DNA of 64,000 nt, taken from assembly GCF_036588685.1 (NCBI RefSeq), contig NC_086378.1:54560001-54624000 (forward strand). Reading direction: 5' to 3'. This document shows, piece after piece, positions 8,421-50,797 of the stretch. Source of the stretch: Mytilus trossulus. Lineage: Eukaryota. Both the position numbers and the translations under genes were made by a program. The notes under the pieces were generated by a model. The model was given only the letters and a program-made list of their open reading frames with translations. It was not told the origin of the DNA and made no database searches. Within the stretch, counting starts at the first letter, position 1, and every line of letters begins with the position of its first letter.

Positions 8421-8780
8421 ATGAGGATTTCCACTCTTTTAACAGTTGCAATATGTATCATAATTACCATAACTTCTATAATGGCACAATTTAATGTCGA
8501 CATTGCTGGTGGCGGCGGCGGCGGCGGCGGTGGACCTAACGCTCCAGGCGGGAGAGGAGGAGATGTAATTACAAACATAAGAATTAATGGAGGTGGAAGA
8601 TTCTTTCGTGGGGGAGGTAATGATCAAGGCGGAAGAGGAAACCAAAGAGGCAATGGAAGAGGAAATAATAGAGGAAACGGAAGAGGAAATAGTAGAGGAA
8701 ATGGTAGAGGAAATAATAGAGGAAATGGTAGAGGAAATGGAAGAGGGAATGGACGTGGTAAAGGTAAAGGAAGAGGTTGA
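8421..8780 (+). CDS. Secreted Gly-rich cationic protein, paralog 1 (119 aa; 1 G9 module; RGN(G/N/S) repeat tail)
   Basis: Acceptor ttttttttcAG (8410-8411) 9 nt before ATG 8421; hydrophobic signal peptide MRISTLLTVAICIIITITSIMA; module NVDIA-G9-PNAP-GGRGG-DVITNIRI; TGA 8778-8780; AATAAA at 8797. The ORF-track start (8376) is intronic. Confidence 0.88.
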   Translation: MRISTLLTVAICIIITITSIMAQFNVDIAGGGGGGGGGPNAPGGRGGDVITNIRINGGGRFFRGGGNDQGGRGNQRGNGRGNNRGNGRGNSRGNGRGNNRGNGRGNGRGNGRGKGKGRG

Positions 8781-11700
8781 AAGAAGTGAAGTCAAGAATA
8801 AAAACTTCACCCGTATATGACTTTGAATTACACAGCTTTGATGAAATGGTGTAGATAATGACAAAGCTATTCATATTTTTGTTGTTGTTTTTAGTTGTGT
8901 TTTTGTTGTTGTTGTGTGTGTGTGTGTGGTTTTTTTTATACAGTTGTTGCTCTCGATCTTCTTTAAAACTTCAGTAACCATATCCTGACATGTCAGCTTA
9001 ACACAAAACGAAGTGATTTGCCCAACACTGAAAGGACTATTTATAGGCATTAGAAGATGTTCAGAGATAACGGATTTTATAGTATTTTTTCACGTGTAAG
9101 AAAACATTGTGAATAAAATTAGTTTTCACTTCATCTTTTTGTCTACAATGAAGTACCATATGTCTTCACCGAACATAATCAGATTTGCAAAACTGTACCT
9201 GGTAGATTCAAATCAAATTGTTTTAGATCTATATAGATCTGTTAACGAATTATACTAGAATCGTTAGCGAGCTCTATGATTCTGATGGGCCGCACATTAC
9301 GAGTTTCTGTATTAAACTTTAACAGGTATACATGTATATGAAAAAAGAGATATTCGCGCGTACGACACGTGTTTCTGGAATAAACTTTATACAGAAACAA
9401 AAAGATGTGGTATGAGTGCCAATGAGACAACTCTCAATCTAAGTCACAATTTTTAAACAGTAAAACATTTTAGGTCAAAGTACGATCTTCTACAAGTTAC
9501 ATTCAAGTTCAACTCGAAGTATGGAAAGCCATCAATGTGAAATGCGAAAGAGGTCAACTTTTTTTAATAAAAGATACTTGAACAGAACAACCAAAAACTG
9601 CATAAAAACCAATTCCCAGGAAAAAGATATCTGAGCGCTCATAAGCATGTTTAACCCCGCTACATTCTATAGGTACCTGTCCCAAGTAAGGAACCTGTTA
9701 TTTAGGGAAAATCCTTGATTGCTGTCTTTTTCTGTTGTTTGTTTTATTTTTACACACAAACATATATAACCCCACCACATTATATGTGTGCCTATCACAT
9801 AGTAAGGAACCTGTTATTTAGGGATAGTCCTTGGTTGCTGTCTTTTTCTGATGTTATTTTTATTTTTACACGGAAACATATTCAACCCAACCACATCTAT
9901 TTGTGCCTTTCACTTAGTAATGCACCTATAATTCAGCAAAAGTTGTTGGTTGCTGTCTTTCATATTTTTTTTTCATTTATTGTTGTTTACAAAACACAGA
10001 CCGTGGGTTTCCTCGTTAGAATTGTTCCACATTTTGTCACATCGGGCTCTTTATTAGCTGACTATATGATATGGGTTTTGCTCATTGTTGAATATCGTAC
10101 GGTGATCTATGGTGCTTATATCCATTTCATTCGGACTGAGGTGTAAAGTTCATACGGACATACCACATCTTATTCTATAACGTCAACTTCTATTAGATAA
10201 ACAACTCAGTCTGGCTTAGGTCTTGGAACACAGTTATTGTCCTTTATACGAATATAGTCCCTAGAATGGACAGTGTGTTACTTGCAATTTTTTCTTTACC
10301 CCTTCCAAATCTATGTCATCATGTTCATGTCTCAAATAGCACATTGGGTGATAAAATTACACTGTAAAACCATTTGGGTCATAAATTTTAAAGTAAAGAA
10401 GTGATTTTTGTCTAACTGAAAAAGGGACAAAAGAGCATTTCGGAAGCTGTCAAAAGATTCCAAGACCCCCTATACATAAAACTTCCATATTTTGAGTTAT
10501 AGCTGATGAAGTTTTGAATAATTTTGATATAATTTGTCCCAAAAGTAGTACAACACACTGTAAAATATTATTGAGAAAGCGCAGGTGCTTTTTTTTTAAA
10601 TTTCCATGTATTGTCTCTACGTTATAACTGTGATCTCAGGCCATTAGTAGCGAATGATTTGGGGGTATGAATGAATTTCCTCGTCACAAAGCCATCTAAA
10701 TATGATGATTTCTTTATAGCTACATTGTATGATGGTGACATGTAAAGAGAAGGTATTTATTATTTGTTGACGTCCACAATAAATTCATGTTGTGTTTCCT
10801 TGTAATAAATTTGACATTTATTTATTTTCCTCGCACTTGTTTGTAAAAGTTCAGACGTGAACGACCAACCATTTGAGAACCAGGTAAAGTTGTGTTATTT
10901 TGTATGATAATTATTCTTTCTACACATTTTTATGTAATAATTAATAGTTCTTTCTACACATTTTTATCTAGAATATAAAGATAGGCTAATTTACATATTT
11001 ACATAATTTTTTATGAGCGTTTAAACATTTTGACATAATTGTGAATTAATTTGTTGACGTCTTTATGATAGGTTTTACCTTATGATTATACACGGAGATA
11101 AATAAACACACTGACATATTATAATATATATTATATTATAAAATGCGGAAACGTAAATAACATTTAACAAAATCAATGTAAAAACAATGCAGAGAAGAGT
11201 ACTATAATTGTATAAAATCACGGACAATAAAAGTCACAATTTAGTTTTTGAGATTATTTTCTCTTCGAATAAGAAAAAACTTATTACTAGAAAATATTTT
11301 GTATTTTTCTTGAACTATTATACGTAAACAAAATTTATCAAAAATATGAATAATGATAAAATATTTTTTTAAGAAAACAAAATGTCAAATCATTTTACCT
11401 TTGGAGAATGGATCCCCTGTTTCTATATGAAAATTCATTTTTGCTCGTTTCTCAATTGCATATATTCTGTGAAAATTTACCTTCTTTTCACTTTTGTGTT
11501 TTGCTTTTTTAATACGATACTACAATGACAAAATTTCAGAGACTGAATTTTCGGCTCTCCCTTGACACCATTTGCGAGTATGGTCTTGAGGAAACGATGA
11601 TAGTCCGTCGGAAGGGAACGATCCACATGGTTGACCCGTGTTAAGAGAGAGCCATATCTCTTGCACGTAAAAGACACCCTTGTAGATTTTGCAAAGGAGC

Positions 11701-12062
11701 AGGATAATGCCGCTACAAGGCAGCACTTTTCCCCCATTCCACTTTAAATAAATATGTTTAAACTAAACTACAATGAGAGTAGTTTATGAAAAAAATAAAT
11801 ATGTTTAAACTAAACTACAATGAGAGTAGTTTATGAAAAAAAAACATTTACCAAAAATACCGAATTCAAGTCAATAACAAAAAGGGAAGTCCATAAAAAG
11901 CGACAAAATTGAACGCCATCAATCAACGGTAGAAGTGAACTAAATCTCAACCCTATGTTATTGTTTTGCAGGGTCAACTTTATTTACTACTGTCATTTCA
12001 ATATCGTATGGAAAAGAGCAAAAATACATTAGATAAGTTAAAATATCATGAATATTTACTAA

Positions 12063-13046
12063 AGCCTCGGTCACACCTTACCGGATAGCACGAACGGACG
12101 GCTATCGGATGAAAATAAAAGTTGTCCGTTGACAAAATTGTTATCCGTTTGGAGTCCGTTGATATACTGACCGAATAAAACGGACGTGTAACGAATGCAT
12201 AACGGACACACATCGGATATGCACCGGACGTTTAACGGAAACGTACCGGACAGAACGGATGTCTAACGTACATCCAACGGACGAGTACCGCATAGAACGG
12301 ACACCTAACGGAAGCGTACCGGATAAAACGGATGAATAAGATATACGGAAAAATTAAAGACGACAATAAGAATACATGTAAATCGCATAAATATTCAAAA
12401 GGTTTCTGTGTAACTAGTTTTGGTTTGTTCAAAATGCCGCCAAAGGGCAGTGTGTGGCCTGAATAAGAGCTGTTTGATTGTGAAGACGTTGCCTTTACTC
12501 TAAGATCGATTTTGAATGATAAGAATTCATGAACCTTCAGAAATCTGACATACCAATAATTGGCATTTCTGACGCGAAATTTTCAATTGGCATTTATCCG
12601 TTTCAGATCCGTTCATCATCCGTTTTATCAGTTATACGTCCGGTAGAAGTCCGTTTCTCATTCGTTCAACATCCGTTTTATCCGTTAAACGTCCGGTAGA
12701 AGTCCGTTGGTAAATTTATCTTCCAGACCTCCAACGGATGTATAACGGACACTGAACGGATACCAAACGGAAACGAAACGGATGAGCACCGTACAAAACG
12801 GACGCCTAACGGACGTTCAACGGACATTTTATCCGTTGGATGTCCGTTCAAAGTTTTGAACATGCTCAAAATTTTCCACCGGACAGAACGGACGTCGACG
12901 GATAAAACGTACGCTTAACGGACATGCAATGGATATGGACGGACGTCTAACGGATAAGAACGGACGTCTAACGGACATGAACGGATTGAAAATAAGTTAT
13001 CCGTTAGGCGTCCGTGCGAGCTATCCGGTAAGGTGTGACCGAGGGT
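12063..13046. mobile_element. PIF/Harbinger-like MITE with ACGGA-rich internal inverted repeats
   Basis: Long TIRs containing CCTCGGTCACACCTTACCGGATAGC at both ends; TAA on both flanks (12060-12062, 13047-13049). Confidence 0.75.
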
Positions 13047-13119
13047 TAAAAAAAAATCAATAAGGCAAAACAAAAAAAAATAGAAAAAGAGGAATCTGTT
13101 CCCCCTAAGAGCCTGTGAT

Positions 13120-13250
13120 TCATGATAACAAAATTGTGTCATGATTAATGCTTACAAAATTGTGTCATGTTTTATGATAACAAAATTGTGTCCTGGTTTA
13201 CTATCACAAAATTTTGTCATGGTTTATGATAACAAATTTGTGTCATGGTT
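13120..13250. repeat. ~29-bp minisatellite (acaaaattgtgtcatggttt)
   Basis: Five diverged copies. Confidence 0.7.
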
Positions 13251-16200: not shown

Positions 16201-16354
16201 GCATAAAATATAATTAGAAAGGAACACAATCTTTCACAATGTCCATTGAAAATGTGCATATTTCAGATATGTTTTCAAATCAGTTCAAGTAAGAATGTGG
16301 GATTTCCCTAATGTCTCATCAATGTGTTTTTTTTTTCTTTTTCAGTGACAGATT

Positions 16355-16903
16355 ATGAACTGTTCTATCGTTTTTTTGATAGCTTCAATATCTATTGTGT
16401 ATTACATCAACTCTGTTTCTGCCCAAGTAAATGTCGACATAACTGGTGGCGGAGGAGGCGGCGGTGGTGGTGATCAAGCACCTGGCGGTAGAGGTGGCGA
16501 TGTCAATACTAAGATTGTCATAAAAAAAGGTAGAGGAGGAAAAAGAGACAAAATTAAAGTAAACGGAAAAACAGTTGGGAAAGGAGAAAATGCAGGTGTT
16601 ATAAAAGTAAATGGAAAAAAAGTTGATATAGGAGGAAAAACAGGTATAAAAGTAGACGGAAAAGGTGTTATCGGAGGTAGAGGGAGAGGACAAGTTGGAC
16701 AGAGAGGACCAGTTGTAGGGAGAGGACAAGTTGGAGGGAGGGGACCAGTTGTAGGGAGAGGACAATTTGGAGGCAGAGGACCATTTGTAGGGAGGAGACA
16801 AGTTGGAGGACAAGGACTAGGGGGACTTCTATTAAACGGACTAAGAAGACAAGTTAGAAAGTTACTGGGAAATGCTGTTAGTCCAAGGGTTAGACGATTT
16901 TAA
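16355..16903 (+). CDS. Secreted Gly-rich cationic protein, paralog 2 (182 aa; 1 G9 module; IKV(N/D)GK and GRGQVGGRGPVV repeats)
   Basis: Polypyrimidine tract plus AG (16344-16345) 9 nt before ATG; signal peptide ending VSA|Q; module NVDIT-G9-DQAP-GGRGG-DVNTKIVI; AATAAA at 16924. Confidence 0.9.
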   Translation: MNCSIVFLIASISIVYYINSVSAQVNVDITGGGGGGGGGDQAPGGRGGDVNTKIVIKKGRGGKRDKIKVNGKTVGKGENAGVIKVNGKKVDIGGKTGIKVDGKGVIGGRGRGQVGQRGPVVGRGQVGGRGPVVGRGQFGGRGPFVGRRQVGGQGLGGLLLNGLRRQVRKLLGNAVSPRVRRF

Positions 16904-17841: not shown

Positions 17842-17930
17842 TAGGGATGGCAAAGAGTACTCGACTACTCAGGTACTCGGTCGGAAGCCCGAGTACTCGA
17901 GTACAGTTTTAGTACTCGGATACTCGTTTT
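17842..17930 (+). mobile_element. One end of a hAT-like MITE (TAGGGATG plus TACTCG subterminal repeats)
   Basis: TAGGGATGGCAA followed by several TACTCG/CGAGTA motifs; the matching other end was not found. Confidence 0.4.
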
Positions 17931-19025: not shown

Positions 19026-19069
19026 ACGCCAGACGCGCGTTTCGTCTACATAAGACTCATCAGTGACGC
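19026..19069 (-). ncRNA. Minimal type I hammerhead ribozyme
   Basis: GCGUCA-CUGAUGA-GUCU(uaugu)AGAC-GAAA-CGCGCG-UC|UGGCGU: core boxes, stem II, stem I with 2 G-U pairs, palindromic stem III; predicted cut after GUC between 19032 and 19031. Confidence 0.88.
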
Positions 19070-19383
19070 TCACATCAAAAAAGTTCAAAAGCCAAACAAA
19101 TACAAAGTTGAAGAGCATTGAGGACCCAAAATTCCAAAAAGTTGTGCCAAATACGTCTAAGGTAATCTACTCCTGGGGTAAGAAAATCCTTAGTATTTCG
19201 TAAAATTCAAAGTTTTGTAAACAGAAAATTTATAAAAATGACCATGTAATTGATATTCATGTCAACACCGAAGTGCTGACTACTGGGCTGGTGATACCCT
19301 CGGGGACGAAACGTCCACCAGCAGTGGCATCGACCCAGTGGTGTAAATAGTTATCAAAAGTACCAGGATTATAATTTTTTTAT

Positions 19384-19427
19384 ACGCCAGACGCGCGTTT
19401 CGTCTACATAAGACTCATCAGTGACGC
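19384..19427 (-). ncRNA. Minimal type I hammerhead ribozyme
   Basis: Identical to 19026-19069. Confidence 0.88.
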
Positions 19428-19741
19428 TCACATCAAAAAAGTTCAAAAGCCAAACAAATACAAAGTTGAAGAGCATTGAGGACCCAAAATTCCAAAAAGT
19501 TGTGCCAAATACGTCTAAGGTAATCTACTCCTGGGGTAAGAAAATCCTTAGTATTTCGTAAAATTCAAAGTTTTGTAAACAGAAAATTTATAAAAATGAC
19601 CATGTAATTGATATTCATGTCAACACCGAAGTGCTGACTACTGGGCTGGTGATACCCTCGGGGACGAAACGTCCACCAGCAGTGGCATCGACCCAGTGGT
19701 GTAAATAGTTATCAAAAGTACCAGGATTATAATTTTTTTAT

Positions 19742-19785
19742 ACGCCAGACGCGCGTTTCGTCTACATAAGACTCATCAGTGACGC
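19742..19785 (-). ncRNA. Minimal type I hammerhead ribozyme
   Basis: Identical to 19026-19069. Confidence 0.88.
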
Positions 19786-20099
19786 TCACATCAAAAAAGT
19801 TCAAAAGCCAAACAAATACAAAGTTGAAGAGCATTGAGGACCCAAAATTCCAAAAAGTTGTGCCAAATACGTCTAAGGTAATCTACTCCTGGGGTAAGAA
19901 AATCCTTAGTATTTCGTAAAATTCAAAGTTTTGTAAACAGAAAATTTATAAAAATGACCATGTAATTGATATTCATGTCAACACCGAAGTGCTGACTACT
20001 GGGCTGGTGATACACTCGGGGACGAAACGTCCACCAGCAGTGGCATCGACCCAGTGGTGTAAATAGTTATCAAAAGTACCAGGATTATAATTTTTTTAT

Positions 20100-20143
20100 A
20101 CGCCAGACGCGCGTTTCGTCTACATAAGACTCATCAGTGACGC
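20100..20143 (-). ncRNA. Minimal type I hammerhead ribozyme
   Basis: Identical to 19026-19069. Confidence 0.88.
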
Positions 20144-20457
20144 TCACATCCAAAAAGTTCAAAAGCCAAACAAATACAAAGTTGAAGAGCATTGAGGACC
20201 CAAAATTCCAAAAAGTTGTGCCAAATACGTCTAAGGTAATCTACTCCTGGGGTAAGAAAATCCTTAGTATTTCGTAAAATTCAAAGTTTTGTAAACAGAA
20301 AATTTATAAAAATGACCATGTAATTGATATTCATGTCAACACCGAAGTGCTGACTACTGGGCTGGTGATACCCTCGGGGACGAAACGTCCACCAGCAGTG
20401 GCATCGATCCAGTGGTGTAAATAGTTATCAAAAGTACCAGGATTATAATTTTTTTAT

Positions 20458-20501
20458 ACGCCAGACGCGCGTTTCGTCTACATAAGACTCATCAGTGACG
20501 C
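20458..20501 (-). ncRNA. Minimal type I hammerhead ribozyme
   Basis: Identical to 19026-19069. Confidence 0.88.
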
Positions 20502-22150: not shown

Positions 22151-24936
22151 TGATATTAAACAATATGTACAATCATTAGATCATGTATACATTTTGCAGT
22201 TGGTCAACCATGATTTTGTAGGATAAGGGGATAAGACTTCCATCTTCATTCCAACTTATAGCACCTCAAAGAAGTTGCAAGGGGTCGTAAACATACAGAT
22301 AGAGTGACACTCTCTCTACATGCACCATAGGATTTTATCGCCCCCTTTTTGCATTAGTAAAATGTATATGAATTCCAAAATTCAAATTTTATATAGATCT
22401 TCGTTTACAATAAAGAAAATATTTTAGAATAAAGGCAAATGAACACAGGGTAAACAAACTGTCTGAACAACGGTGGTCGGACACACAAGTTATGTTTGGA
22501 AAAAACACTATTCAATTGTTATAATACCAGGCTCAACCCACCTTTTCTTCTTATAATGTCCTGTATCATGTTAGGAATATGGCAATTGTTATAAAAAAGG
22601 CCGTATCTATAAAATATATTATGTTGGCGTTTATTTTTATAGAAGTTCAGTGTTTATGTCATTCCGTTGTTTCTCACTTAATGTTGATGTATATCTCTCA
22701 GTTTTTTTGTTGTGTCCTGGATTTGTTTTTAACCTAATCGATTTATGACTATTGAACAGTTGTATACTCCTATTGCCTTAATTTTTAGGTTACTTATATG
22801 CGTATTACTTTTACTTCATGCATTAAAGTTGAATTGAAAATAACGAAATTGATTATATTTAAGGAGACGAAATATTTGACAAAATTGGTTTCATTGTTAA
22901 TGGAAGATGGGGTAAAAAAATAAACATACACATTTGTCAGTTGATAGCAGAATTGTGAATCTATTTAGTTAGGCTATATGTAGACGATACGGTGTATATT
23001 TTGAAAGATAAGTAAAGGTTGAAACTATTGCATATTCGTTTTCATTCAATACGTTAACTTAAGTTGAAATCACTCTAACTACTAAGTAAATTTTATCCAG
23101 GTAACCAACGTCCAACATACGGTTGAGTAGTTTTAATCTGTTAATATCGATGCTTATATCTCATCAATCGAATTTGGAAGATATAAACCAAACTGAGGAT
23201 CGTGTCCGCAGTGTGCATAAGTTAATTTATAAAGGAAATTGTAATATTTCGTTATTATTTTAGTTAAATCAAATAAACCCGACTTTTGCATAATAGCGTA
23301 TGTGCTTGCAAAAAGTAATATCACAAAAGTACTGAACTCCAAGGAAAAATTCAAGTGCAAAGCAGGTAATAAAATTGTTAAAAAAATCGGGGTATTTACC
23401 GACCTATTATATGCGCACTCGTCATAACTGCGTCGTTTATCCATTTACTTAATAAATTGACTGTCTCAAATTACAACAAAAAAGGTTAAATGTCAAGCTT
23501 GACCGTCATATTGTCTCCAATAAAATATATAAACAAACCCAAAATATTGGTTGGACGATTCTGAAGTTATAATACAGACATAAGTGTTACCACTTACAGT
23601 ATTACTCAAAAATTAATAATTGGTTTTCTGGTTTGAAAATAGATTTAAACGTCGTTTATATATAGAACATCAACTTTATACGCATATTTGGGTATGTATA
23701 GTTAAAATAATTATCAATTTAACTAAACATTTAGCATGGCGATTCTAATGTGTACGGAGTTTTATTTAAAGAAGATTTATACTTGCTGTCATCGACTTTC
23801 ATTATTTACCGTTGTTACTTTTTGTAAAACCTTCAATTGGAAACAGAGGAAATTAGTTCATTATTTTATTTTGTTGTTGAGGTCAAATTTGAAATGAAAA
23901 TGACCAAAAAAGGAAATATGTTTTAGTAAGATACTTTGAGGGTTTGATTGCTTGAATTTTTTTCTAATGGATTTGTGCCTTTGCGTGCATATTCAGGACG
24001 ACCATTTAAAAGATGTAGTCAACCAAAGCTTATACATTTATATAAAAAAAAAAGCATACCGAGTTTGAGGCGACAATACAATCCATTGTTTCTATAAACC
24101 ATTTTAGACAAGGCGGAGTGAGACCTTTCTGAAAGATATATATATATATTTTTTAACCAATTATGTTTATAATTGAATGTGAATAAAACAAGAAATAACG
24201 TTAAATAATCATGAACAACTGAGCATGCGCTATAGGGTGAATGGATTAGGTTTATAATGTAACATATAGTTAAAGTCTAATTAAAAACCAGATATTATTA
24301 AACAGTCCAGGACACAATTCTAAAGTTAGACAAATGTTTAAAAAATACAAACCAAAAAACAAAGAAAAATTACGATTTCAGTAAAAAAAAAAAAAAATCA
24401 TGTAGTTAAACGCATTAAATACGTTATCTATTTTCAATTATGGGTAGCAAATTCAGACCTATGTATATGATCTGTTAAAACTGAATGACGCCTGACTGGC
24501 CTTACAAAGAGAAGGGATATACTAAATGGATAATCAAACTCCTAAGTGGAAAATTAACAGTCAATGCAATGGTCAAAAATGAAAAACGACAAAAAGACAC
24601 AAATCAATATACAAAACCCAGCAATGAAAACTAAAAACGAGCAACTCGAACTCCCAAAAAGAAACAAGGGTATAGCAGGTGCACTGGAAGGGTAAACATA
24701 TCCTGTTCGACAAGTGACAACCCAAATATCGGCCTTTATACTTCATAATAGACATATATCAAAGCAACATATAGAAATAAAAAAAATAATACTAGTTCTC
24801 ACAATGCACATTGACAATTTGTATTTTCACGAAAGTTTTCAAATCAGCTCAAATTAGGTATAAAGGAAGTGGGTTTTCCCTTATAATGTCTCATAATTAT
24901 ATATAGATTCTATTGATTTTTTTTCAGTGACGGATT

Positions 24937-25341
24937 ATGAACTGTGCAACCATTATTGTGATAGCTTCGATATCTGTTGTATTTTACCTCAACTCAGTAA
25001 CTGCTCAAGTAAATGTCGACATAACTGGTGGCGGAGGAGGCGGCGGTGGTGGTGATCAAGCACCTGGCGGTAGAGGTGGCGATGTCAATACTAAGATTGT
25101 CATAAAAGGAGTTGGAAGAGGAGGTATAAAAGTAAACGGAAACGGAGTTCGACAAGGAGGTAAAGGCAGATTAAATAATAAAGGTAGAAGACGAGGAGGA
25201 CAAAACATCGGGTTTGGAGGAAGAGGACAAGTTCGAGGGAGAGGACAAGTTTGGGGGCGAGGACAAATTCGAGGACTAGGACGAGGCGGGGGTCAGTATA
25301 GAGGATCACTAGGACATGCTGGTGGATTTAGACGTTTTTAG
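24937..25341 (+). CDS. Secreted Gly-rich cationic protein, paralog 3 (134 aa; 1 G9 module; GRGQ(V/I)x repeats)
   Basis: Acceptor AG 24926-24927, 9 nt before ATG, with near-identical context to paralog 2; signal peptide ending VTA|Q; module identical to paralog 2; ends RRF*; AATAAA at 25361. Confidence 0.9.
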   Translation: MNCATIIVIASISVVFYLNSVTAQVNVDITGGGGGGGGGDQAPGGRGGDVNTKIVIKGVGRGGIKVNGNGVRQGGKGRLNNKGRRRGGQNIGFGGRGQVRGRGQVWGRGQIRGLGRGGGQYRGSLGHAGGFRRF

Positions 25342-31628: not shown

Positions 31629-31661
31629 TAGTTATCAAAGGTACCAGGATTATAATTTAAT

Positions 31662-31705
31662 ACGCCAGACGCGCGTTTCGTCTACATAAGACTCATCAGT
31701 GACGC
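31662..31705 (-). ncRNA. Minimal type I hammerhead ribozyme
   Basis: Same 44-nt motif as in the first array. Confidence 0.88.
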
Positions 31706-32018
31706 TCAGATCAAAACAGTTAAAAAGCCAAACAAATACAAAGTTGAAGAGCATTGAGGACCCAAAAATTCCAAAAAGTTGTGCCAAATACGGCTAAGGT
31801 AATCTACTCCTGGGCGTAAGAAAATCCTTAGTTTTTCGAAAATATCAAAGTTTTATAAACAGAAAATTTATAAAAATTACCATATAATTGATATTCATGT
31901 CAACACCGAAGTGCTGACTACTGGGCTGGTGATACCCTCGGGGACGAAACGTCCACCAGCAGTGGCATCGACCCAGTGGTGTAAATAGTTATCAAAGGTA
32001 CCAGGATTATAATTTAAT

Positions 32019-32062
32019 ACGCCAGACGCGCGTTTCGTCTACATAAGACTCATCAGTGACGC
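32019..32062 (-). ncRNA. Minimal type I hammerhead ribozyme
   Basis: Same 44-nt motif as in the first array. Confidence 0.88.
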
Positions 32063-32375
32063 TCAGATCAAAACAGTTAAAAAGCCAAACAAATACAAAG
32101 TTGAAGAGCATTGAGGACCCAAAAATTCCAAAAAGTTGTGCCAAATACGGCTACGGTAATCTACTCCTGGGCGTAAGACAATCCTTAGTTTTTCGAAAAT
32201 ATCAAAGTTTTATAAACAGAAAATTTATAAAAATGACCATATAATTGATATTCATGTCAACACCGAAGTGCTGACTACTGGGCTGGTGATACCCTCGGGG
32301 ACGAAACGTCCACCAGCAGTGGCATCGACCCAGTGGTGTAAATAGTTATCAAAGGTACCAGGATTATAATTTAAT

Positions 32376-32419
32376 ACGCCAGACGCGCGTTTCGTCAACA
32401 TAAGACTCATCAGTGACGC
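32376..32419 (-). ncRNA. Minimal type I hammerhead ribozyme (one stem II substitution)
   Basis: Core intact; plus strand reads gtcaaca instead of gtctaca, which shortens stem II. Confidence 0.8.
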
Positions 32420-32975
32420 TCAGATCAAAACAGTTTAAATGCCAAACAAATACAAAGTTGAAGAGCATTGAGGACCCAAAAATTCCAAAAAGTTGTGCCA
32501 AATACGGCTAAGGTAATCTACTCCAGGGCGTAAGAAAATCCATAGTAATGCTCTTCTGACCTATAGTATCAACTTCAAAATCTAGTAATCACATCCTTTA
32601 ACATAACACAATAATAACCACTGGCACAGAAGCTATGCAAGCCAATTCACACGAAAGTATGTAAAATTACATATTGTATTTTAATAAAATCCCCTTTCTT
32701 TTCCCAATCTTAAAACATTATAATCTACAAATTACAAAAAAAAATTGACAATGACAATGACAAATCATACGGATTCTATGTAATGATTCAAAATTCATTT
32801 CATTGGATAATATAAATGGGTATGCAAATTTAAGAAAGGTGTTTCACCTCAGTCTATACATGTAATGCATTTATATATTTATTTTATTTTTTTTATTTTT
32901 AATAGATTGTACGAAGCTACGACAAACTGAACTAATGAAAAACAGTCATAAAGACCAAGTTTTACTCTATACACA

Positions 32976-33437
32976 ATGAAAGTTGCAAACGGTTTATTAA
33001 CAATCCTTATCTTTTACAATTGTTGTTCTGTGCTGATCTGTGGACAGAAAAGTCACAATAATGGTTTAAATTTGAATATTTCTGGAGGAGGGGGTGGAGG
33101 AATTGGAGGAATTGGTCCCGGGGGAGACGGTGGAAGCGTCATCACTAACCTGAATATCAAGAAAATAAAAAATGTTCGCAAGAATAAAGGCGACAGACAA
33201 AAGATTAAGTTAGCAAACGGGACAACCCTTGAAGGATTTAATTTAAATATTAATGGCGGCGGAGGTGGTGGCGGCGGTGGTCCTGGAGCAGGAGGCGATG
33301 GTGGAGATGTAATTACTAATGTTAATGTGGGAAAGATGAAGAATGTTGATAAGATTAAACCGTGGAAGAAAAAGAAAGACAAAAAAGACAAAAAGAAGGA
33401 TAAAAAAGATAAAAAGAAAGACAAAGAAACAAAATAA
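32976..33437 (+). CDS. Secreted Gly-rich cationic protein, paralog 4 (153 aa; 2 G9 modules; KKD-repeat tail)
   Basis: Signal peptide MKVANGLLTILIFYNCCSVLICG; two modules 57 aa apart; Lys/Asp tail; candidate acceptor AG 32904-32905; AATAAA at 33480 and 33551. Confidence 0.88.
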   Translation: MKVANGLLTILIFYNCCSVLICGQKSHNNGLNLNISGGGGGGIGGIGPGGDGGSVITNLNIKKIKNVRKNKGDRQKIKLANGTTLEGFNLNINGGGGGGGGGPGAGGDGGDVITNVNVGKMKNVDKIKPWKKKKDKKDKKKDKKDKKKDKETK

Positions 33438-33821
33438 ACTAAAGAATTACGGTGAACAGCATTATAATAGCAAAAGAGCAATAAATCAGATTTTAGATAA
33501 AAAAAAAAATTAAAGAATTACGATTGGTGTTGATAAGGAAATATTATATGAATAAAGATGTAATTACACACGTCTTTATTATTTCTCTATTGACTGAGAT
33601 TTGAGACAAAATAAATTCGATTGCTAATATATTGTTTATATTTGCCTTATGTTAGATTCGACCGTCCTATATATAACAAGGACACTTAACAAATTTAAAT
33701 TCAAATCTTTATTGTCATTACACTACATATTTATAGTATGTGACAAAGCATAACAAAATAAAAAGAAACAATAAAGTTAACGAACACATGTTATAGTTCT
33801 CATAGTTCATATACTTTTTTT

Positions 33822-39438: not shown

Positions 39439-40292
39439 AACAACTCTGTAATAATAATGATTTAAATTTGTATAATTGAATAAACATTTCCATTCAAACC
39501 ACCAAATAAATAAATATACATGTATGTATTAGATGAAAACCAATCCAGAATAGCTATTTGGACGCAAAAAGTTTTTGTTTATTGTTTATTGCAGTTTGAC
39601 GATAAGTTTCTTTTTTTTTTTTTGCAATTTTGATTTTAATAAATATTTTGTATATTGATATTTGCCAAATATGGATGCCAATGATATGCGAAGATTCTGA
39701 AAATAAATTGTTTTAAAACATGTGAATACCGCTTCTTGTTTCATATTATTTCACAAAAAAATCGTTAATCATTGGTTGATTTGAAGTAATTTCAAGATTT
39801 CGTTTCTAACAATACATTTTCTCCCGGAATACCATGGCAGCTTTCAAGATTGTTGAAAAATTCAATAAATATATATTTATTTCTAGGAAATGCTTTTATC
39901 AACAAGATAAAAAAATCTAGCTAAAAAAATATGGCTAAAAAAATCTAAATTAAGTAGAAGTATTTGAAGTTCCCAGTTTTGTTTACTTTTTTGCAAATTA
40001 AACATAAATATAAAACAGACAGAAATATGACTCATTCGATGTGTTAAAACTTTTGATTTAGCCATTTGATAATATTATACTTTCCGTTTTGAATTTTTCT
40101 TGGAGTTCGGTATTTTTTCTCTTCTAGTTTTACTCGGAATCAATTGATCTTAGATATCTGCTCAGTTAAAAGAGTTATTGGATACACAGTTTAATTTTGT
40201 TCACCTAATAACAAAGCTAAAACAAAAACTAAACAAAAGAAATATGTTTGTACGCAACTATTGTGTGTTTTCCTTTCCTTTTTGTAGAAAAG

Positions 40293-41090
40293 ATGAACAT
40301 CTCAATAACTGACATCGGGCTGATATGGATCCTTTGCATTTATAACTATTGTTCATGCCATGGATATTATGGAGATCATTATTATAGAGGACAGGGACGA
40401 TATTCAAGGCAAAAACCGCAATCATACGGTAGAGATTTAGAAAGTCCATTTAAAACGGAAGCCATAGAACAAAGTCAATTAATCAAAGACTTAAAAGCAC
40501 GTGTTAGCAATTTAGAAAAAGTTATCCGTGATTATAAGGATGGAAACATTGATATTAATATCAAAGGAGGAGGGGGTGGTGGTGGAGGCGGACTCGAACC
40601 AGGAGGAAATGGTGGAAATCTAACGACTCATTTATTTATAAAGAAAATCAAAACGGTTCATACTAAAGATGGAACAAAAGTCATTATAAAGCCTGGTGAT
40701 GGGCGAACATTACGAGCGCTTAAACTAATGATCGAAGGAGGAGGTGGCGGGGGTGGGGGCGGAATAGGAAAAGGCGGCGACGGTGGAAGTATATTTACAA
40801 ACTTGACAATCAAAACATTTAAGACTGTATTTAGAGATGGAATAAATGTCACTACTGCAGAGGGTATAAATCCACTAGAAGGACTCGGTTTGAACATTAA
40901 AGGCGGTGGCGGAGGTGGCGGCGGCGGTACAGGCCCTGGTGGCGATGGCGGTGATTTGATTACATCTATTGTCATAGAGAATGTAAAGGATGTAACTATT
41001 AATGGAACTTGGACAAAGGAAGATAGGAAGGCATGGAAATTAATGAAGAAGTTACGGAGGCAAAAGAATAAACAGAAAGGAAATAAATAG
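40293..41090 (+). CDS. Secreted Gly-rich cationic protein, paralog 5 (265 aa; 3 G9 modules)
   Basis: Acceptor tttgtAG (40286-40287) 5 nt before ATG 40293 (ORF-track start 40248 is intronic); signal peptide; Tyr/His-rich N-terminus; short heptad segment; three modules at 57 and 55 aa spacing; K/R tail. Confidence 0.9.
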   Translation: MNISITDIGLIWILCIYNYCSCHGYYGDHYYRGQGRYSRQKPQSYGRDLESPFKTEAIEQSQLIKDLKARVSNLEKVIRDYKDGNIDINIKGGGGGGGGGLEPGGNGGNLTTHLFIKKIKTVHTKDGTKVIIKPGDGRTLRALKLMIEGGGGGGGGGIGKGGDGGSIFTNLTIKTFKTVFRDGINVTTAEGINPLEGLGLNIKGGGGGGGGGTGPGGDGGDLITSIVIENVKDVTINGTWTKEDRKAWKLMKKLRRQKNKQKGNK

Positions 41091-44000: not shown

Positions 44001-44291
44001 TCTAATATTTAATGCGTGTCCCTCGGTTTTGGTTTGTTACCCCGATTTTTGTTTTTTGTCCATGGATTCATGAGTTTTGAACAGCGGTATACTACTGTTG
44101 CCTTTATTTATTGGGGGAAACATTCGTCTAATATTTTAACCATAATATAAATCTTTCTAATGAATTATACAACCATCTGATAGATTGCAATAGAATATTG
44201 CGAAAAAAAAATAACATCAGGTCATTGCTCTAAAATAAAGTGCATGAAGTTCCTTTGTTACTTAAAGTTTCAATTTTTCATTTTAATGTAA

Positions 44292-44405
44292 ACAAGGATA
44301 CACATTTGCACATACACTGTATATTTAAAGATATTTATAAGATATAGTGCATTTGTAATAAACATTCTATTGTTCTTCATAGGAAAAACCTAAACAGGTA
44401 GGTTA
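44292..44405 (+). promoter_or_regulatory. Putative core promoter and short non-coding exon 1 of paralog 6
   Basis: ACAAGGATAC (44292), TATAAG (44336), AG|GTAGGT donor (44398). Confidence 0.5.
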
Positions 44406-44938
44406 TACGTCTTTAAAACAATATCAAGATAAATTTGCTAATTAATAAAATTTGACCATGCATAGAAGGAAAATATTATCAACTGTTCTCAAAGATACGT
44501 TATTACAGATAACTGATATTTCTTTTCTGTAAAACCGTCTTCTCTTTTTTTTCCTTTTCGGAATAGTATATGATATAATACATAAAATTGAAAATAATGT
44601 TGGTGTCGTTAATTTTATTAATAAGAATGTGTTTATTTTTTCATCTCTTTACCATACAGAACTCGAATGTTATTGAGATAACTTACAATTGTCATATAGA
44701 ACTGCGAAAATGTGCGGAATAAAGCGCAAATAACGTTAAAAAAAGTATAAAATATTATCAAAACGCGCAAACATGACGCGACGTGATTTGACCTTTTGGT
44801 TGCTTCAATGTGTTTTATCATCAAATAATGTCGCCATTAACATTATACCCAATTTAAGACAGAAATAAAAATAAAAAAATAAAAAAAGTTTTTTTTAAGC
44901 ATTAATTTAGTTCGTTTCTATTTCTTCTTGCAGAAAAA

Positions 44939-45745
44939 ATGAACATCTCAATAATTTACATCAGTGTGATGTTTATCTTTGTTATTTATAACAATTGTTC
45001 AGGACATAGATCATATGCAGAAAACTATCGCCGAAGACACGGAAGACTACCAAGACATAGACCACGATCTAGAACTTTTGGAAGAAGATTAGGAAAGAAA
45101 GCAATACAAAAAAGTCTAGCTCCGAAAGAATTAGAAAGAACTTTAAGCAATACTGATCAGGTAGCACTTTCTAATATTGACAGAAATATCAATATGAATA
45201 TAAAAGGAGGCGGAGGTGGTGGCGGGGGAGGAATCGATCCAGGTGGAAATGGTGGAAATCTTACTACTAACTTGTTTATTAATAAAATCAAGACAATTCA
45301 TACCAGTGACGGAACAATAGTAAAAATAAAGCCTGGTGATGGACGAACATTAGAGGCACTTAAATTGATCATTGATGGGGGAGGTGGCGGGGGAGGAGGG
45401 GGGATAGGAAAAGGCGGTGATGGAGGAAGTTTATTTACAACCTTGACAATCAACAAATTAAAGACTGTTTTCAGAAATGAAGCAAATGCAACTATTGTTG
45501 AAGTTCAAAACCCTCTACGTGGACTCAGTTTGAATATTAATGGCGGTGGTGGAGGTGGAGGTGGGGGACCAGGTCAAGGTGGAGATGGCGGTGATTTGGT
45601 TACAAACATTGTCATAGGAAAAGTTAAGACAGTCACAAAAAATGGTGCTAGAAGAAGAAAAAATAAAAAGGATCGGAAATTAAAAAGGATGTTGAAGAGA
45701 AAAAGGAATAACAAAAACAAGATTAAGCCATTACCTAATTACTAG
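44939..45745 (+). CDS. Secreted Gly-rich cationic protein, paralog 6 (268 aa; 3 G9 modules)
   Basis: Acceptor ttgcAG (44932-44933) 5 nt before ATG; signal peptide; Arg-rich N-terminus; three modules (57/55 aa spacing); K/R tail; AATAAA at 45850. Confidence 0.9.
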   Translation: MNISIIYISVMFIFVIYNNCSGHRSYAENYRRRHGRLPRHRPRSRTFGRRLGKKAIQKSLAPKELERTLSNTDQVALSNIDRNINMNIKGGGGGGGGGIDPGGNGGNLTTNLFINKIKTIHTSDGTIVKIKPGDGRTLEALKLIIDGGGGGGGGGIGKGGDGGSLFTTLTINKLKTVFRNEANATIVEVQNPLRGLSLNINGGGGGGGGGPGQGGDGGDLVTNIVIGKVKTVTKNGARRRKNKKDRKLKRMLKRKRNNKNKIKPLPNY

Positions 45746-48700
45746 TAGTGATGTGACGGAAAATGACAAAATAATGTTATCAAGAGGATTCATCTTTTCC
45801 TAAAAATATCAACAAAGGCTTAAAAATTTTGATGCTAAATTTCAAGCTAAATAAAATATGTACGAATCAAAATTACACAAAAAATAAACCGAAATTTAAC
45901 GACAAAAATACTTCATCATTAATGAATTCAGAACTTGTACTTATATGATCTGTTCTATTCTGAAAACGTATTATTTATATGCCAGCGTTTCTTACTTTAA
46001 ACTAATTTGTCTCAAATTAAGACAACACTTAGCCATACAATTTGTTACTCAACTATTGCAGCAGAAAGTTTCGTTAAAAGAACATATTTCTAATCTATTT
46101 TCATGTTTGCTTATGTTCTTACATTAATTTACAAGTGTGAAACGTTTTATTTGATTTGTATGATATAAAGCGACTGTAACCCCAATTCTTGTTTAAATAC
46201 CATTTGTCTCTGTCATGGTATAGTGATTCTTTGTCGGTTTGTTCTGTGCTGTATATCTTTGCTGTTATTATTTCATAAAGTTAGGTTAAACCGCTTTCAT
46301 ATATACATGTATATCATGTTCGTACACAGATGAAATAGTTTATAAAATTTATTCTATTTGGTTACATATTTGTTTCATAATGAAACGCCTCATTGGAAAC
46401 GACTTAAACTAATAAAATATCTGTAAAATCTTTGTTGTTTGCTTTTTTCATATGAAAAAAACTGTGATTGGTCAATTTCCCTGCAGTACCAGAGTTATTA
46501 TGACCGGTTTTGCACGAAAGAGAGGTATACAACGTTAATAGTTAGTATGTGTAAAGCTCATGTGTGGAATTATACCCTGTATGAATATTTTTATAATTAC
46601 CTAATAGATGTGATAGAATTTAACTGTTATGAGTAATACAACATATTATATTGAAGCCAAAACAAGATCACTTATTTTTAGATCAAGTATTGCTGCCAAA
46701 ATGTTGTTCTCAAAACATAAAGTCAGAAACAAATCATAACTATTTCCAATATAAATTAAGTACTAAAACTTGTTAGAGAAGCCAAAAACATTCCCCCCTA
46801 ACTCAAAATTTAAAACATCGTTTCCTTTACAAAATGGCCATCCAGTTTATGGCCATGGTGTTTACATCTATTTTTGGTAATGATTCCTGTGGATATTTCT
46901 TATTCAGATCATTTCATAAAACGAATTTTAGGAAATTTCCCATCAATAATATGGAATTAAAATATTTGCGCCTGTCCTAAGTCAGAAATCTGATGAACAG
47001 TAGTTGTCGTTTGTTTTTATGTAATTTATACGTGTTTCTCGTTTCTCTTTTTTTTTTTTAAATAGACCGTTGATTTTCCCGTTTGAATGGTTTACACTAG
47101 TAATTTTGGGGCCCTTTATAGCTTTTTGTTTGGTGTGAGCCAAGGATCCGTGTTGAAGGCCGTACATTGACCTTTAATGGTTTACCTTTATAAATTGTTA
47201 TTTGGATGGAGAGTTGTCTCATTGGCACTCATGCCACATCTTTCTATAGCTTTTCATTTATTGTTCTGCTTTCCATTTGTTACTGTCTAGTATAAAAAAC
47301 AAAAGAAGACACGATATGTTAACCAATGAAACAACTTATTTCAATGACAAAATAAATTGTGTTTCAACAAAAAACGAAAAATGTGAAACAGACAATAAAA
47401 AATAAAATCACAAAAATACCGAACTCCTAGGTAAGTTCAAAAAGGAAATATCCAAGTCAAAAGGCAAAATCAAAAGCTCAAAATCATCAAACGAATGGAT
47501 AACATCTGTCATATTCCTGGCTTTGGTCAGGCATGTTCTTATGTAGAAAATAGTGGATTAATCCAACAACTTCTACTGTATTTCAAAATTCTCAATTGGG
47601 ACAGGAACTTAAGGAATGTATACATATGTGTTTAGCGCTGAGTCATGTCCGATCTGGGACATTGTTCAACATATGGAAACTGTCATGTTGACCACTGAAC
47701 ATTCAAATCTGTATTTGAAGTCACTAAAGTCTAGTTCAAAAGTCCATTTTTAAATTATTAATAAATAATGTTTTCATATATAAAAGGTGTCTATGTTTTG
47801 TTTTCTAGCCCTTTTTTCTATTTTCACCTGTCCATTTCAGTTATGTTTAATGAATGAAATGATTATTTGATTTTTGCTCATCTTTCCAACAAGAATCCCC
47901 TTATGACATTGTATCTTCATATTTTATGTGGTAAATTCAAAATTACATCTGTTACTAATTGTTCTCCCTAATTAGTTACTTGTTTCTCCTTTGTATTGCA
48001 GACGTTTTACAACTTACAGATCGGTCCGTTCATAACCTGTACATCAAGTTAATTTAATGACCAGATATTTAGGCAATTTTATATTACCTAGTAATAGTTT
48101 TGTTTACTGCTCCGGTCGGCCTTTAGACCAAAGTCTGGTTAACACGGAAACAATAATTGTATCAAATATTTATACAATGAAACACATGTAGAGCTAAATG
48201 TGGTATGAAGAGTTCTAAACACCATTACAAGTCAAATACAGATATGTCATTAGTTCTCTTGTTGTTTTTATGCATGATTTATCATTTAAAAATAAACAAA
48301 GAGACACCACGTGTTAAAAAATATTTAGTATATAATGATATTCAATTTTTTTTAACAGAAAAAAACAAATAAAAGGTAAGTAATTATACTACATCTCTAT
48401 CTAGTTTCGAATCAATTTCAATTCCGAATATTCTTACAGACATGTCTGCTTTGAATGAATTAGACCAGTCATACAAACATTACCGAAGGCACTCGAATAC
48501 TCGTACACACATTGACGTTTTGTTGATGGAATTGAGCCATTCATTCAGATACCATAATTTTAACCGTGCAAGGTGATATCATTTCTGTTCATTTCGTTTT
48601 ATGTAAATCGGACTCGTATGAGACATGTTAAGAAACAGAGCTTTAGTCATTTATTAACATATCTTCATCGTGAGAATATTCTTAATAGTTTATTTTTAGA

Positions 48701-49459
48701 AATTATAATTTCTGGACAGTATAATTTACAATGATTTGATACATACATTTTAATATATATTCAAAATCCGTTTTTAAAAATATTATTTTCACAACGTTGC
48801 TAGTGATGAGCAATCGAAATTCACGGTTCTAAGTATTTGAAAGTGCTTACAAAGGAAAACGAAGAAAATGTATATTTAAACACTTGACGCATCTATTCTT
48901 ATGTATTCCTAAAGGTAAAAGTGCATAACAGCTGCTGCCAAAAAAGACTCATTTAAAATGTCGTCATTAAGATATTTGAGAAACGGAAAAAAGTCCTAAC
49001 CCCAAAACAAATGATAATTATGTAGTTGTTGATATAATATATACATTGTGTGTTATTAGATTTTAACAAATTTAAACTATATTAAATTGTTATTTTAAGT
49101 CAGATCTGTTAAATTGTTTTAATAATGTCATCATAGTAATATCATATTTGTGCAGTAAAGTTGTCTTGTTTTATCATGCTATCCATTTATCAATCGTGTT
49201 GGTTGCAATTTCAAGGCCAAAAATATTAGGGTGACAGACCACAGATGTTAAGATTAAAACATGTAACCGTCTTTATTATTTAATAATTAGACGCTGCATT
49301 CATATACGAAGGTGTCTGAAAGTGCATTTTATTAGATTTTGTGTGGTCTGAAATCATTAGACACTGGAATATTCGTCCGATCTGTAATTTAATCGCGTTT
49401 GTCATCATAACGATGTTGATATTTAGCAGGATATCCCTTTCTTGCTGACTGACATGTTT

Positions 49460-49800
49460 AGGCTCAACCACTATGTCACTGCCACTACTGTTGGAGTCTG
49501 TATCCCCGAGAGTTATCAACACTTCTGTTTTACATTTAATTTCATTGATAAGATCATAAAAATAAATTAGCTGTTAACAAAACTTTGTTTTTTTTTGACA
49601 TACTGAAGAGTCTTTATCCCAGAAATTGATAATTTCAGCTGTATTTAATAAAACCTATCAGAATCTATGGTCTCAATACTCTTCCACTTCGTACTTTATT
49701 TTGCCTTTTAACATTTTTATTTTAGCGTAATTGGAGAGTATATTATTTACGAACGCATGTCTTACATACAACATATTGAGCCTGGGATCTATGTTTAGTA
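49460..49800 (+). mobile_element. Highly decayed retrozyme-like unit just upstream of paralog 7
   Basis: Patchy similarity to the 59761-60437 unit (gccactactgttgga, ccccgagagttatca, ctcttccacttcgtactt); ribozyme core lost. Confidence 0.45.
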
Positions 49801-49930
49801 TAGTCAAGAGTGCATTCGATTTTCCCAGAATTTAATTTATCTTGTTTTGTATCTTTTTAACCGATAAGTGAGATTTAAACATTGATTAACTTCTGTCGTA
49901 TACGTTGTTTATATTTCTCTTTCAGAAAAG

Positions 49931-50797
49931 ATGAACCTTACAGTTAGTTATGCCGTCGTGTTTTGGTTACTTGTCATTGATGACAATTGTTCAGCAGAGC
50001 TAACAGATGACAATAAAGTTATAGAAACGAGAGAAAAAGACACGGAAAAAGAAGCAAAAGTAAAGTTTCAACCATTGAAAACAGATTTTAAAAATGCTAT
50101 TAGTAATGCTCAAGAGGTCAACCATGATAATAATAAAGGAAATTATAGTTTGAATATTAAAAGGGGTGGTGAGGGCGGGGGTGAAGGAATCAGTCCAGCT
50201 GGAGATGGTGGTAGTATTAGAACTAATTTTGTTATCAAGAAAATAAGGACGATTCATACAAGTGAGGGATCAAAAACACTTATCAAAACAGATGATGGAC
50301 GAAAATTAACTTCACTTAATTTAGTTATTGACGGAGGAGGTGGCGGCGGTGGAGGTGGAGTAGGAAAAGGCGGAGATGGAGGAGGGGTAATAACAAACCT
50401 GTTAATCAGGAAAATTCAGTCTGAGCATAGAAAAGGGTCAAAGGTCACTACTTCCGGATCTGAAAGCCCTCTACATGGAGTGAGTCTTAACATTAAGGGT
50501 GGTGGTGGCGGAGGCGGCGGTGGACCAGGTCCGGGAGGCAAAGGTGGAAACCTTGTTACAAATGTTGTTATAGGGAAACTACAGCAAAGAGATTCTAGAA
50601 ATGGGTCTGTGGAAAGAGCAAATCAGAAGAAAAAGCAAATTGTTAAAGACGCTAGAAATGGTACCGTTGAAAGAGTAGATCATAAGGAAAAGAAAATTGT
50701 AAAGAACGCGAGAAAGAAACTAATGAAAGCAATGAAAAATCAAAAAAAGAAAAGGAAACGGATCGAAAAAGAAGGCAAAAAGACTAGAGAAAAATGA
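49931..50797 (+). CDS. Secreted Gly-rich cationic protein, paralog 7 (288 aa; 3 modules, first one substituted)
   Basis: Acceptor ttcAG (49924-49925) 5 nt before ATG; putative signal peptide; modules at 57/55 aa spacing; long Lys-rich tail with a 19-aa internal duplication. Confidence 0.88.
   Translation: MNLTVSYAVVFWLLVIDDNCSAELTDDNKVIETREKDTEKEAKVKFQPLKTDFKNAISNAQEVNHDNNKGNYSLNIKRGGEGGGEGISPAGDGGSIRTNFVIKKIRTIHTSEGSKTLIKTDDGRKLTSLNLVIDGGGGGGGGGVGKGGDGGGVITNLLIRKIQSEHRKGSKVTTSGSESPLHGVSLNIKGGGGGGGGGPGPGGKGGNLVTNVVIGKLQQRDSRNGSVERANQKKKQIVKDARNGTVERVDHKEKKIVKNARKKLMKAMKNQKKKRKRIEKEGKKTREK

Follow-up and report, generated by a model that had tools for sequence, protein, structure and literature searches.

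The stretch of Mytilus trossulus DNA analysed here, an AT-rich window of 64 kb (29-39% GC) at positions 54560001-54624000 of its contig in a 1.30-Gb genome, contains a tandem cluster of genes for predicted secreted, glycine-rich proteins built on one repeated module, in which a tract of nine glycines (G9), a short loop and a GGxGG motif are held between two strands. A preliminary description, made from the sequence of the window, had placed seven same-strand genes here, and open reading frames (ORFs) are found at all seven positions, each on the plus strand (g1-g7; Table 1). The seven stand as the members within the window, but they are not the complete cluster, because an eighth gene, g0, lies upstream of the window. 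The glycine run of g0 consists of 11 Gly followed by AP, which preserves the spacing of a G9 tract and a four-residue loop, and its short tail is of GK/GR type with a terminal Gly. Besides g0, the 20 kb that precede the window contain no further long ORF. When the genome was searched in six frames with a module profile, 15 hits were returned, all in one cluster, 14 of them in the window and one in g0. The family consists of eight tandem genes over about 55 kb, with no second cluster in the genome.

Module, precursor and gene structure

The 14 module copies in the window (1, 1, 1, 2, 3, 3 and 3 in g1 through g7), a count that reproduces the one given in the preliminary description, align over 43 columns in three parts. 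In the first part, a strand, every other residue is hydrophobic and the last is an invariant Ile; the middle part is the nine-residue Gly tract, the loop and GGxGG; and the last part is another strand of the alternating kind, in which one Thr is invariant and one Ile nearly so. Exact G9 is present in 12 of the 14 modules, and the tracts of the other two (module 1 of g4 and module 1 of g7) are degenerate yet nine residues long. The loop after the tract has three residues in g4-g7 and four residues in g1-g3, and the second arm of the glycine segment, alignment columns 23-29, reads X-GG-X-GG-X. In genes with more than one module, the start-to-start spacing of GGxGG is 57 and 55 amino acids (aa) in g5-g7 and 57 aa in g4. 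At the nucleotide level, a seven-codon GGN pattern has 36 overlapping matches in the window, all on the plus strand within g1-g7, vs. 0 in 100 shuffles. Long Pro-/Ser-rich ORFs on the minus strand (8439-8864, 16385-16813, 33053-33481 and 40658-40975) are merely the complements of the GGN runs and were rejected as separate genes.

Signal peptides and cleavage sites were called by a hand rule. All eight proteins have an N-terminal hydrophobic stretch (12-aa Kyte-Doolittle mean of 2.3-3.1, the range given for g1-g7), and every precursor has a small-x-small site near residue 22/23, so that, judged from their sequences, the products of g0-g7 look secreted. Every Cys position precedes the predicted cleavage site, which leaves predicted mature chains without Cys. 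The net charge of the whole proteins is +15 to +33, and the tails are rich in Lys and Arg. The results on these three features, namely a signal peptide in each gene product, Cys-free mature chains and Lys/Arg-rich tails, agree with the preliminary description.

The paralogs differ in their tails, which carry GRGN repeats, RG repeats, KKDK repeats or a predicted basic helix, and they differ in their N-terminal regions. The mature N-terminal regions of g5 (40359-40430) and g6 (45005-45100) are rich in Tyr, Arg and Gly and have several di- or tribasic sites, and that of g7 is acidic and Lys-rich; the near-neutral N-terminal regions of g5-g7 could be cleaved as pro-regions. Tyr content is 0-9 residues per protein, at most 3.4%, and Tyr is located in the N-terminal regions of g5 and g6. 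The mature products of g0-g3 are small (about 64-160 aa) and strongly cationic, with Gln as the first mature residue; the last residue of g0 and of g1 is Gly, which might signal amidation.

Seven of the eight genes, all but g4, have a YAG behind a tract of 78-94% pyrimidine at a fixed distance upstream of the ATG, exactly 9 nt in g0-g3 and exactly 5 nt in g5-g7; for comparison, a pyrimidine content of 80% is reached at only 0.6% of the AG sites in the window. The leading candidate acceptor of g4 is weaker and lies 70 nt upstream of the ATG. The preliminary description had placed each single coding exon behind a splice acceptor. This is upheld, in the form of candidates at fixed positions, for g1-g3 and g5-g7, and for g4 there is only the weaker candidate. 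The placement of the acceptors fits a candidate non-coding first exon, by analogy with myticalin genes, in which the first exon is non-coding (PMC12294457). Among the upstream regions compared, no shared first exon or promoter was found, only repeats and a block common to g2 and g3.

Table 1. Genes, candidate splice acceptors and modules of the cluster (window coordinates, except for g0).
Feature	Position	Strand	Description
g0	contig 54555395-54555658, 4.3 kb upstream of window		87 aa, one module; g1 paralog
g1 candidate acceptor	8392..8411	+	pyrimidine tract + CAG, ATG 9 nt on
g1	8421..8780	+	119-aa precursor: predicted signal peptide, one module at mature N-terminus, GRGN-repeat tail with terminal Gly
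g1 module	8481..8609	+	43-aa unit: strand, G9, 4-residue loop, GGRGG, strand
g2 candidate acceptor	16326..16345	+	94% pyrimidine, ATG 9 nt on
g2	16355..16903	+	182-aa precursor: one module, K-rich and RG-repeat tail
g2 module	16418..16546	+	includes tract 16424-16525, identical to 25006-25107 of g3
g3 candidate acceptor	24908..24927	+	ATG 9 nt on
g3	24937..25341	+	134-aa precursor: one module, RG-rich tail
g3 module	25000..25128	+	includes 102-nt tract 25006-25107, identical to g2
g4 candidate acceptor (weaker)	32886..32905	+	ATG 70 nt on
g4	32976..33437	+	153-aa precursor: two modules (first degenerate), KKDK-repeat tail
g4 module 1	33054..33182	+	Gly tract broken by one Ile; 9-residue length intact
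g4 module 2	33225..33353	+	
g5 candidate acceptor	40268..40287	+	ATG 5 nt on
g5	40293..41090	+	265-aa precursor: N-terminal region rich in Tyr, Arg and Gly; three modules; basic tail
g5 module 1	40536..40664	+	
g5 module 2	40707..40835	+	
g5 module 3	40872..41000	+	
g6 candidate acceptor	44914..44933	+	ATG 5 nt on
g6	44939..45745	+	268-aa precursor: three modules, basic tail; protein used for structure modelling
g6 module 1	45176..45304	+	
g6 module 2	45347..45475	+	best-scoring part of the structure model (10-residue blocks, mean pLDDT 73 and 82)
g6 module 3	45512..45640	+	
g7 candidate acceptor	49906..49925	+	ATG 5 nt on
g7	49931..50797	+	288-aa precursor: three modules (first degenerate), long K-rich tail
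g7 module 1	50132..50260	+	Arg/Glu substitutions in Gly tract; 9-residue length kept; orthologs degenerate here too
g7 module 2	50303..50431	+	
g7 module 3	50468..50596	+	
pLDDT, predicted local distance difference test.

Distribution, constraint and gene history

The module-profile search that the preliminary description had proposed, run exhaustively with HMMER against 1.84 billion cluster representatives (E up to 0.001), returned four matches and revealed no relative outside Mytilus: three of the four were traced to Mytilus, and the other, P0021, shares 85% identity with g7. Word-based homolog searches likewise found relatives only in Mytilus, and the g4 and g2 queries retrieved only proteins of the window. 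The results indicate that, so far as public data reach, the family is confined to Mytilus.

A Pfam search of the seven window proteins at E up to 1 gave no family match except for a chance SNARE match in g7 (E 0.45). The ESM Atlas holds g6, yet it gave no feature match for the whole protein or for the core, and its structure matches had template-modelling (TM) scores of at most 0.38. A literature search on the accessions, on the automatic names and on 'glycine-rich' Mytilus proteins turned up no paper that describes the family. The automatic names that databases give to the orthologs, 'cabeza-like', 'IcsA autotransporter-like' and 'PE_PGRS10-like', have no support in any family search and are likely artefacts of Gly composition; a further label among the orthologs is 'hypothetical'. 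We conclude that the family is undescribed and uncharacterised, as the preliminary description had supposed.

Its separation from collagen, from shematrin and KRMP, and from foot proteins of the 3,4-dihydroxyphenylalanine (DOPA) type, proposed at the same time, is borne out by profile search or by composition. For collagen and preCol, there is no Pfam match, and Gly is arranged as a G9 run and GGxGG, not as Gly-X-Y triplets. Shematrin, KRMP and mussel foot proteins resemble the family in being Gly-rich and secreted with a basic C-terminus, and a short stretch in g5 and in g6 is rich in Tyr and Arg. However, Tyr is not high and chain-wide, as in DOPA-type foot proteins, and the Gly tract here is fixed at G9, whereas shematrin and KRMP have variable Gly runs; no shematrin or KRMP relative outside Mytilus was found, shematrin being set apart without direct sequence comparison. 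No Pfam profile of arthropod glycine-rich antimicrobial peptides of the attacin, gloverin and diptericin types was matched. A parallel in genomic setting is with the myticalins, Mytilus antimicrobial peptides that are likewise found only in Mytilus, secreted, Cys-free, cationic and encoded in tandem with an apparent non-coding first exon (PMC12294457). Myticalins differ in that their sequences are unrelated and rich in Pro, Arg and aromatic residues, and in having two coding exons and an anionic extension at the C-terminus.

The G9 tract is encoded by a mixture of GGA, GGC, GGT and GGG codons that differs from paralog to paralog, and for this reason a microsatellite origin, or a tract tolerant of changes in length, is unlikely. 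In 32 pattern-matched modules from the window species, M. galloprovincialis, M. edulis and M. californianus, the tract is nine residues long in all 32 and pure Gly in 31, and the loop is always three or four residues. The preliminary description had held that a lack of purifying selection would argue against functional genes. We find that ratios of nonsynonymous to synonymous divergence (dN/dS; Nei-Gojobori) between paralogs are 0.33-0.57 for whole genes, 0.20-0.39 for the three-module core, as under purifying selection, and 0.73-1.02 for the N-terminal region. Comparison of g5-g7 with their one-to-one orthologs (VDI21652 of M. galloprovincialis for g5, 84% identity; VDI21651 of M. galloprovincialis for g6, 85%; P0021 for g7) gives the same order, with 89-95% identity in the core and 64-79% identity in the N-terminal region.

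The sequences also indicate how the cluster may have grown. Modules match best by position, with identities of 0.40-0.73 at non-Gly columns for modules at the same position and of about 0.3 across positions, implying that the three-module design is older than the duplications that gave g5, g6 and g7. The accession numbers are consecutive in M. galloprovincialis, and g6 and g7 are fused in the M. californianus and M. edulis gene models, which suggests that gene order is conserved among Mytilus species. The 102-nt tract with zero differences between g2 and g3 spans exactly the module, and the flanks have diverged; because the tract is identical against a background synonymous divergence (dS) of about 0.5 between the two genes, it is likely the product of recent gene conversion.

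Taken at the level of sequence, these results indicate that the family is real and under constraint. A non-functional set, arising either from chance ORFs over GGN microsatellites or from decaying copies, would agree with the failure of word-based searches to find g2 itself, or orthologs of g1-g4, among public predicted proteins. This possibility is very improbable, and is already largely refuted: the mixed codons and the fixed tract length contradict a microsatellite origin, all eight of eight frames are intact and each has a predicted signal peptide, dN/dS is below 1, orthologs are present in at least three other species, and candidate acceptors lie at a conserved position.

The surroundings of the genes include two arrays of ribozyme motifs. 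Between g2 and g3, five type-I hammerhead ribozyme motifs (RF00163) lie on the minus strand at 19026-20501 with a 358-nt period, each scoring 33 bits with E 9e-6, which is 1 bit below the gathering score and is seen with E-value filters only; the array is a retrozyme-like tandem array. Just upstream of g4, a second array has three motifs on the minus strand at 31662-32419 with a 357-nt period, and related repeat copies are also present upstream of g0 and g7. Downstream of the cluster, exons resembling those of an SLC7-type amino-acid transporter, recognised by eye from translations, lie on the minus strand at 53381-53647 and 63497-63757.

The predicted fold

Structure prediction with AlphaFold2 gave a poor model for full-length g6 with an alignment of six sequences (pLDDT 50) and a better model for the g6 core, residues 76-236, with an alignment of nine sequences (pLDDT 65.2; predicted TM score 0.54). 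In the core model, seven strands flank three stretches to which DSSP assigns no secondary structure, and most 10-residue blocks over the Gly tracts have mean pLDDT values of 73-82, among the top values of the model. A VIA-align comparison of the core model with 48,161 PDB representatives ranks first the snow-flea antifreeze protein 2pne, with Z 8.5 and a root-mean-square deviation (rmsd) of 1.6 A over 66 aligned of 81 residues (chain 1-81 on model 14-145), and ranks second the nine-helix springtail antifreeze protein 7jjv, with Z 6.5 and rmsd 2.0 A; rank 3 has only Z 3.3. The full-length g6 model, made independently and with its own alignment, has the same top two matches, with Z 5.2 and 4.9. 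Because both models rank 2pne and 7jjv first and second, we read both as containing a six-helix bundle, and we consider it fairly probable, on the strength of these models, that the three Gly hairpins of g6 pack as six polyproline-II (PPII)/polyglycine-II helices.

The module sequence agrees with this prediction without recourse to AlphaFold. The polyglycine/PPII helix has three residues per turn (10.1101/2023.11.25.568672), and a tract of nine residues therefore corresponds to exactly three turns. With the same period, the register X-GG-X-GG-X of the second arm would put all of its side chains on one face, as in outer-layer helices; in phage S16 gp38, the buried helices are the all-Gly ones (PMC8409303). 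The length of G9 and the register of the second arm thus fit PPII geometry.

Several points weigh against the bundle. By mean pLDDT, confidence is moderate, and each run gave four further models with lower scores (38-55 and 30-45). The training set of AlphaFold included 2pne, whose fold the program may apply too readily, and VIA-align cautions that models with no clear match commonly have a best Z of 7-8. A Foldseek search of both models against the PDB plus viral models at E up to 0.001 found nothing, the best match being the FapC amyloid with a TM score of 0.14, and the ESM Atlas model has a pLDDT of 0.53. A six-helix bundle cannot be formed from one module alone, and a complex prediction for three copies of the g1 module scored 0.04, which counts neither for nor against self-association. 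The fold is a predicted one.

The predicted arrangement differs from each known system that it resembles. The springtail PPII-bundle antifreeze proteins (2pne/3bog; 7jjv of Granisotoma rainieri) are likewise secreted animal proteins, whose antiparallel Gly-rich PPII helices, at least six in number, lie in two layers, as do the six predicted for the mussel protein. However, there is no sequence relationship in the profile search of 1.84 billion proteins or in a PDB sequence profile search, in which no antifreeze protein matched and the best match, GTPBP10, was non-significant (E 0.13). The springtail proteins are a continuous chain of GXX repeats, whereas the mussel helices would be three hairpins set in beta-hairpins about 55 residues apart, with about 35 residues, mostly beta-strand, separating helices in the g6 core model. 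In addition, the mussel proteins have one hairpin arm of pure Gly, no Ala-rich face, no disulfide and long polybasic tails. Obg and GTPBP10, which have the 'Obg fold', likewise have Gly-rich PPII helices that emerge from beta structure, with a local GG-x-GG-D-V helix-to-strand motif, but Obg is an intracellular GTPase domain, the GTP1_OBG profile of Pfam did not match at E up to 1, and Obg is not in the structural match lists. The glycine-rich domain of ALK/LTK and phage S16 gp38 likewise have runs of 6-8 Gly as buried PPII helices on a beta domain (PMC13243192, PMC8409303); both differ in architecture, size and lineage, and neither is among the top 50 structural matches.

Possible functions and their significance

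The explanation we favour, to which we assign a probability of roughly 45%, is that the cluster is a Mytilus-restricted eight-gene family in which a rigid bundle serves as a secreted, cationic binding or defence set at mucosal or digestive surfaces. In this explanation, the conserved unit would be a beta-hairpin with a rigid glycine hairpin inserted at its tip. The hairpin strands would alternate hydrophobic and polar residues, with the invariant Ile before the Gly tract and the invariant Thr after it; the first arm, G9, would form an all-glycine helix of exactly three polyglycine/PPII turns and would be followed by the turn of three or four residues; and the second arm would present its side chains along one face. 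In g5-g7, six such helices would form a flat two-layer bundle on a beta-sheet, as in the snow-flea antifreeze protein, and this bundle may act as a rigid platform. Its tethers to anionic targets, for example microbial envelopes, mucus or food particles, would be the N-terminal regions, which evolve fast, and the polybasic tails, which are particular to each paralog. For the single-module products of g0-g3, burial of the hairpin would require self-association or co-assembly.

The proposed role is drawn from charge and by analogy with other Mytilus effector clusters, and the digestive part of it has one expression lead. In the digestive gland of M. galloprovincialis, a 'glycine-rich protein' transcript of 1,021 bp was reported as the third most expressed, at 3.27 times actin (PMC4203926), and the four Logan contigs that contain the g5-ortholog ORF are 1,021, 1,021, 1,021 and 1,018 nt long. 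The link is a weak one, a coincidence of length and not an identification, and the glycine-rich transcript is not in the supplement of that paper.

Other functions can be set against the same observations. Subunits of an extracellular material, such as byssus, periostracum, shell or ligament matrix, or a gel, would have their all-Gly layers zip into a polyglycine-II lattice, with single- and multi-module paralogs co-assembling and basic tails binding mineral or anionic partners. In composition, a Gly-rich core with a basic C-terminal tail recalls mollusc shell proteins. Such a material accords with the Tyr/Arg/Gly-rich N-terminal stretch in g5 and g6, with the concentration of paralog differences in the tails, with the ability of all-Gly helices to be surrounded on all sides, as in the polyglycine II honeycomb (10.1101/2023.11.25.568672), and with the predicted docking of a hexaglycine peptide on bundles of this kind (PMC13243192). 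However, the two M. galloprovincialis accessions (VDI21651 and VDI21652) are absent from the supplement to one byssus transcriptome/proteome study of that species (PMC12607631), a Tyr content of 0-3.4% is not that of a DOPA-type protein, and the single expression lead is to the digestive gland; we regard a structural material as unlikely. Less likely again, in our estimate, are disordered, Gly-rich cationic peptides that resemble arthropod Gly-rich antimicrobial peptides, in which G9 would be a flexible hinge, no bundle would form, and activity would come from charge, amphipathic strands and tails. The moderate to low model confidence would be expected of such peptides (most AlphaFold2 models poor; Atlas pLDDT 0.53), as would the small size, strong positive charge and N-terminal Gln of g0-g3 and the possible amidation Gly of g0 and g1, and the tandem cluster with its candidate non-coding first exon resembles myticalin genes (PMC12294457). 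A hinge, however, would tolerate changes in length, whereas the tract is nine residues in 32 of 32 matched modules and in module 1 of g7; the X-GG-X-GG-X register of the second arm is preserved, conservation is highest in the core, and the Gly tracts are among the highest-scoring parts of the core model.

The structural matches themselves raise the question of ice binding, in which the proteins would be antifreeze proteins of intertidal mussels, convergent with the springtail PPII-bundle antifreeze proteins. Structural matches are limited to two springtail antifreeze proteins, antifreeze-like activity was long ago reported in M. edulis, and freeze-tolerant M. trossulus is suspected of having ice-binding proteins (10.1101/2021.08.30.458284). 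Yet a shared fold is no proof of a shared function. The ice-binding face of springtail antifreeze proteins is Ala-rich and charge-poor (PMC8409303), whereas an Ala face is lacking in the mussel modules and the proteins carry a high charge; and the family is just as well conserved in warm-temperate M. galloprovincialis and M. californianus. We consider ice binding improbable. The type II antifreeze-like candidate of Box et al. from M. coruscus is a different protein.

Glycine-rich PPII bundles are a rare third protein architecture, represented by a handful of unrelated cases (springtail antifreeze proteins, Obg, ALK/LTK and phage adhesins); among animals, the polyglycine-helix bundle has until now been seen chiefly in snow-flea antifreeze proteins. 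The new element in the mussel family is a predicted polyglycine-II bundle formed from hairpins grafted on a beta-sheet, which would have evolved apart from the known examples. If the prediction is true, a bundle built from the fixed hairpin of G9, turn and XGGXGGX set into a beta-hairpin would have a new and very regular construction and would be a natural template for protein design. The family would also clearly exemplify a young set of genes that is restricted to one lineage and has a defined fold. If ice binding were true, the family would be the source of the unidentified Mytilus antifreeze activity and a striking convergence of fold between mollusc and springtail. If the digestive-gland lead holds, transcripts of the family would rank with the most abundant ones in that organ. 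According to a 2025 review (PMC12294457), bivalves have no known glycine-rich peptide, and the small members, if they act as peptides, would be the first glycine-rich cationic peptides of any bivalve.

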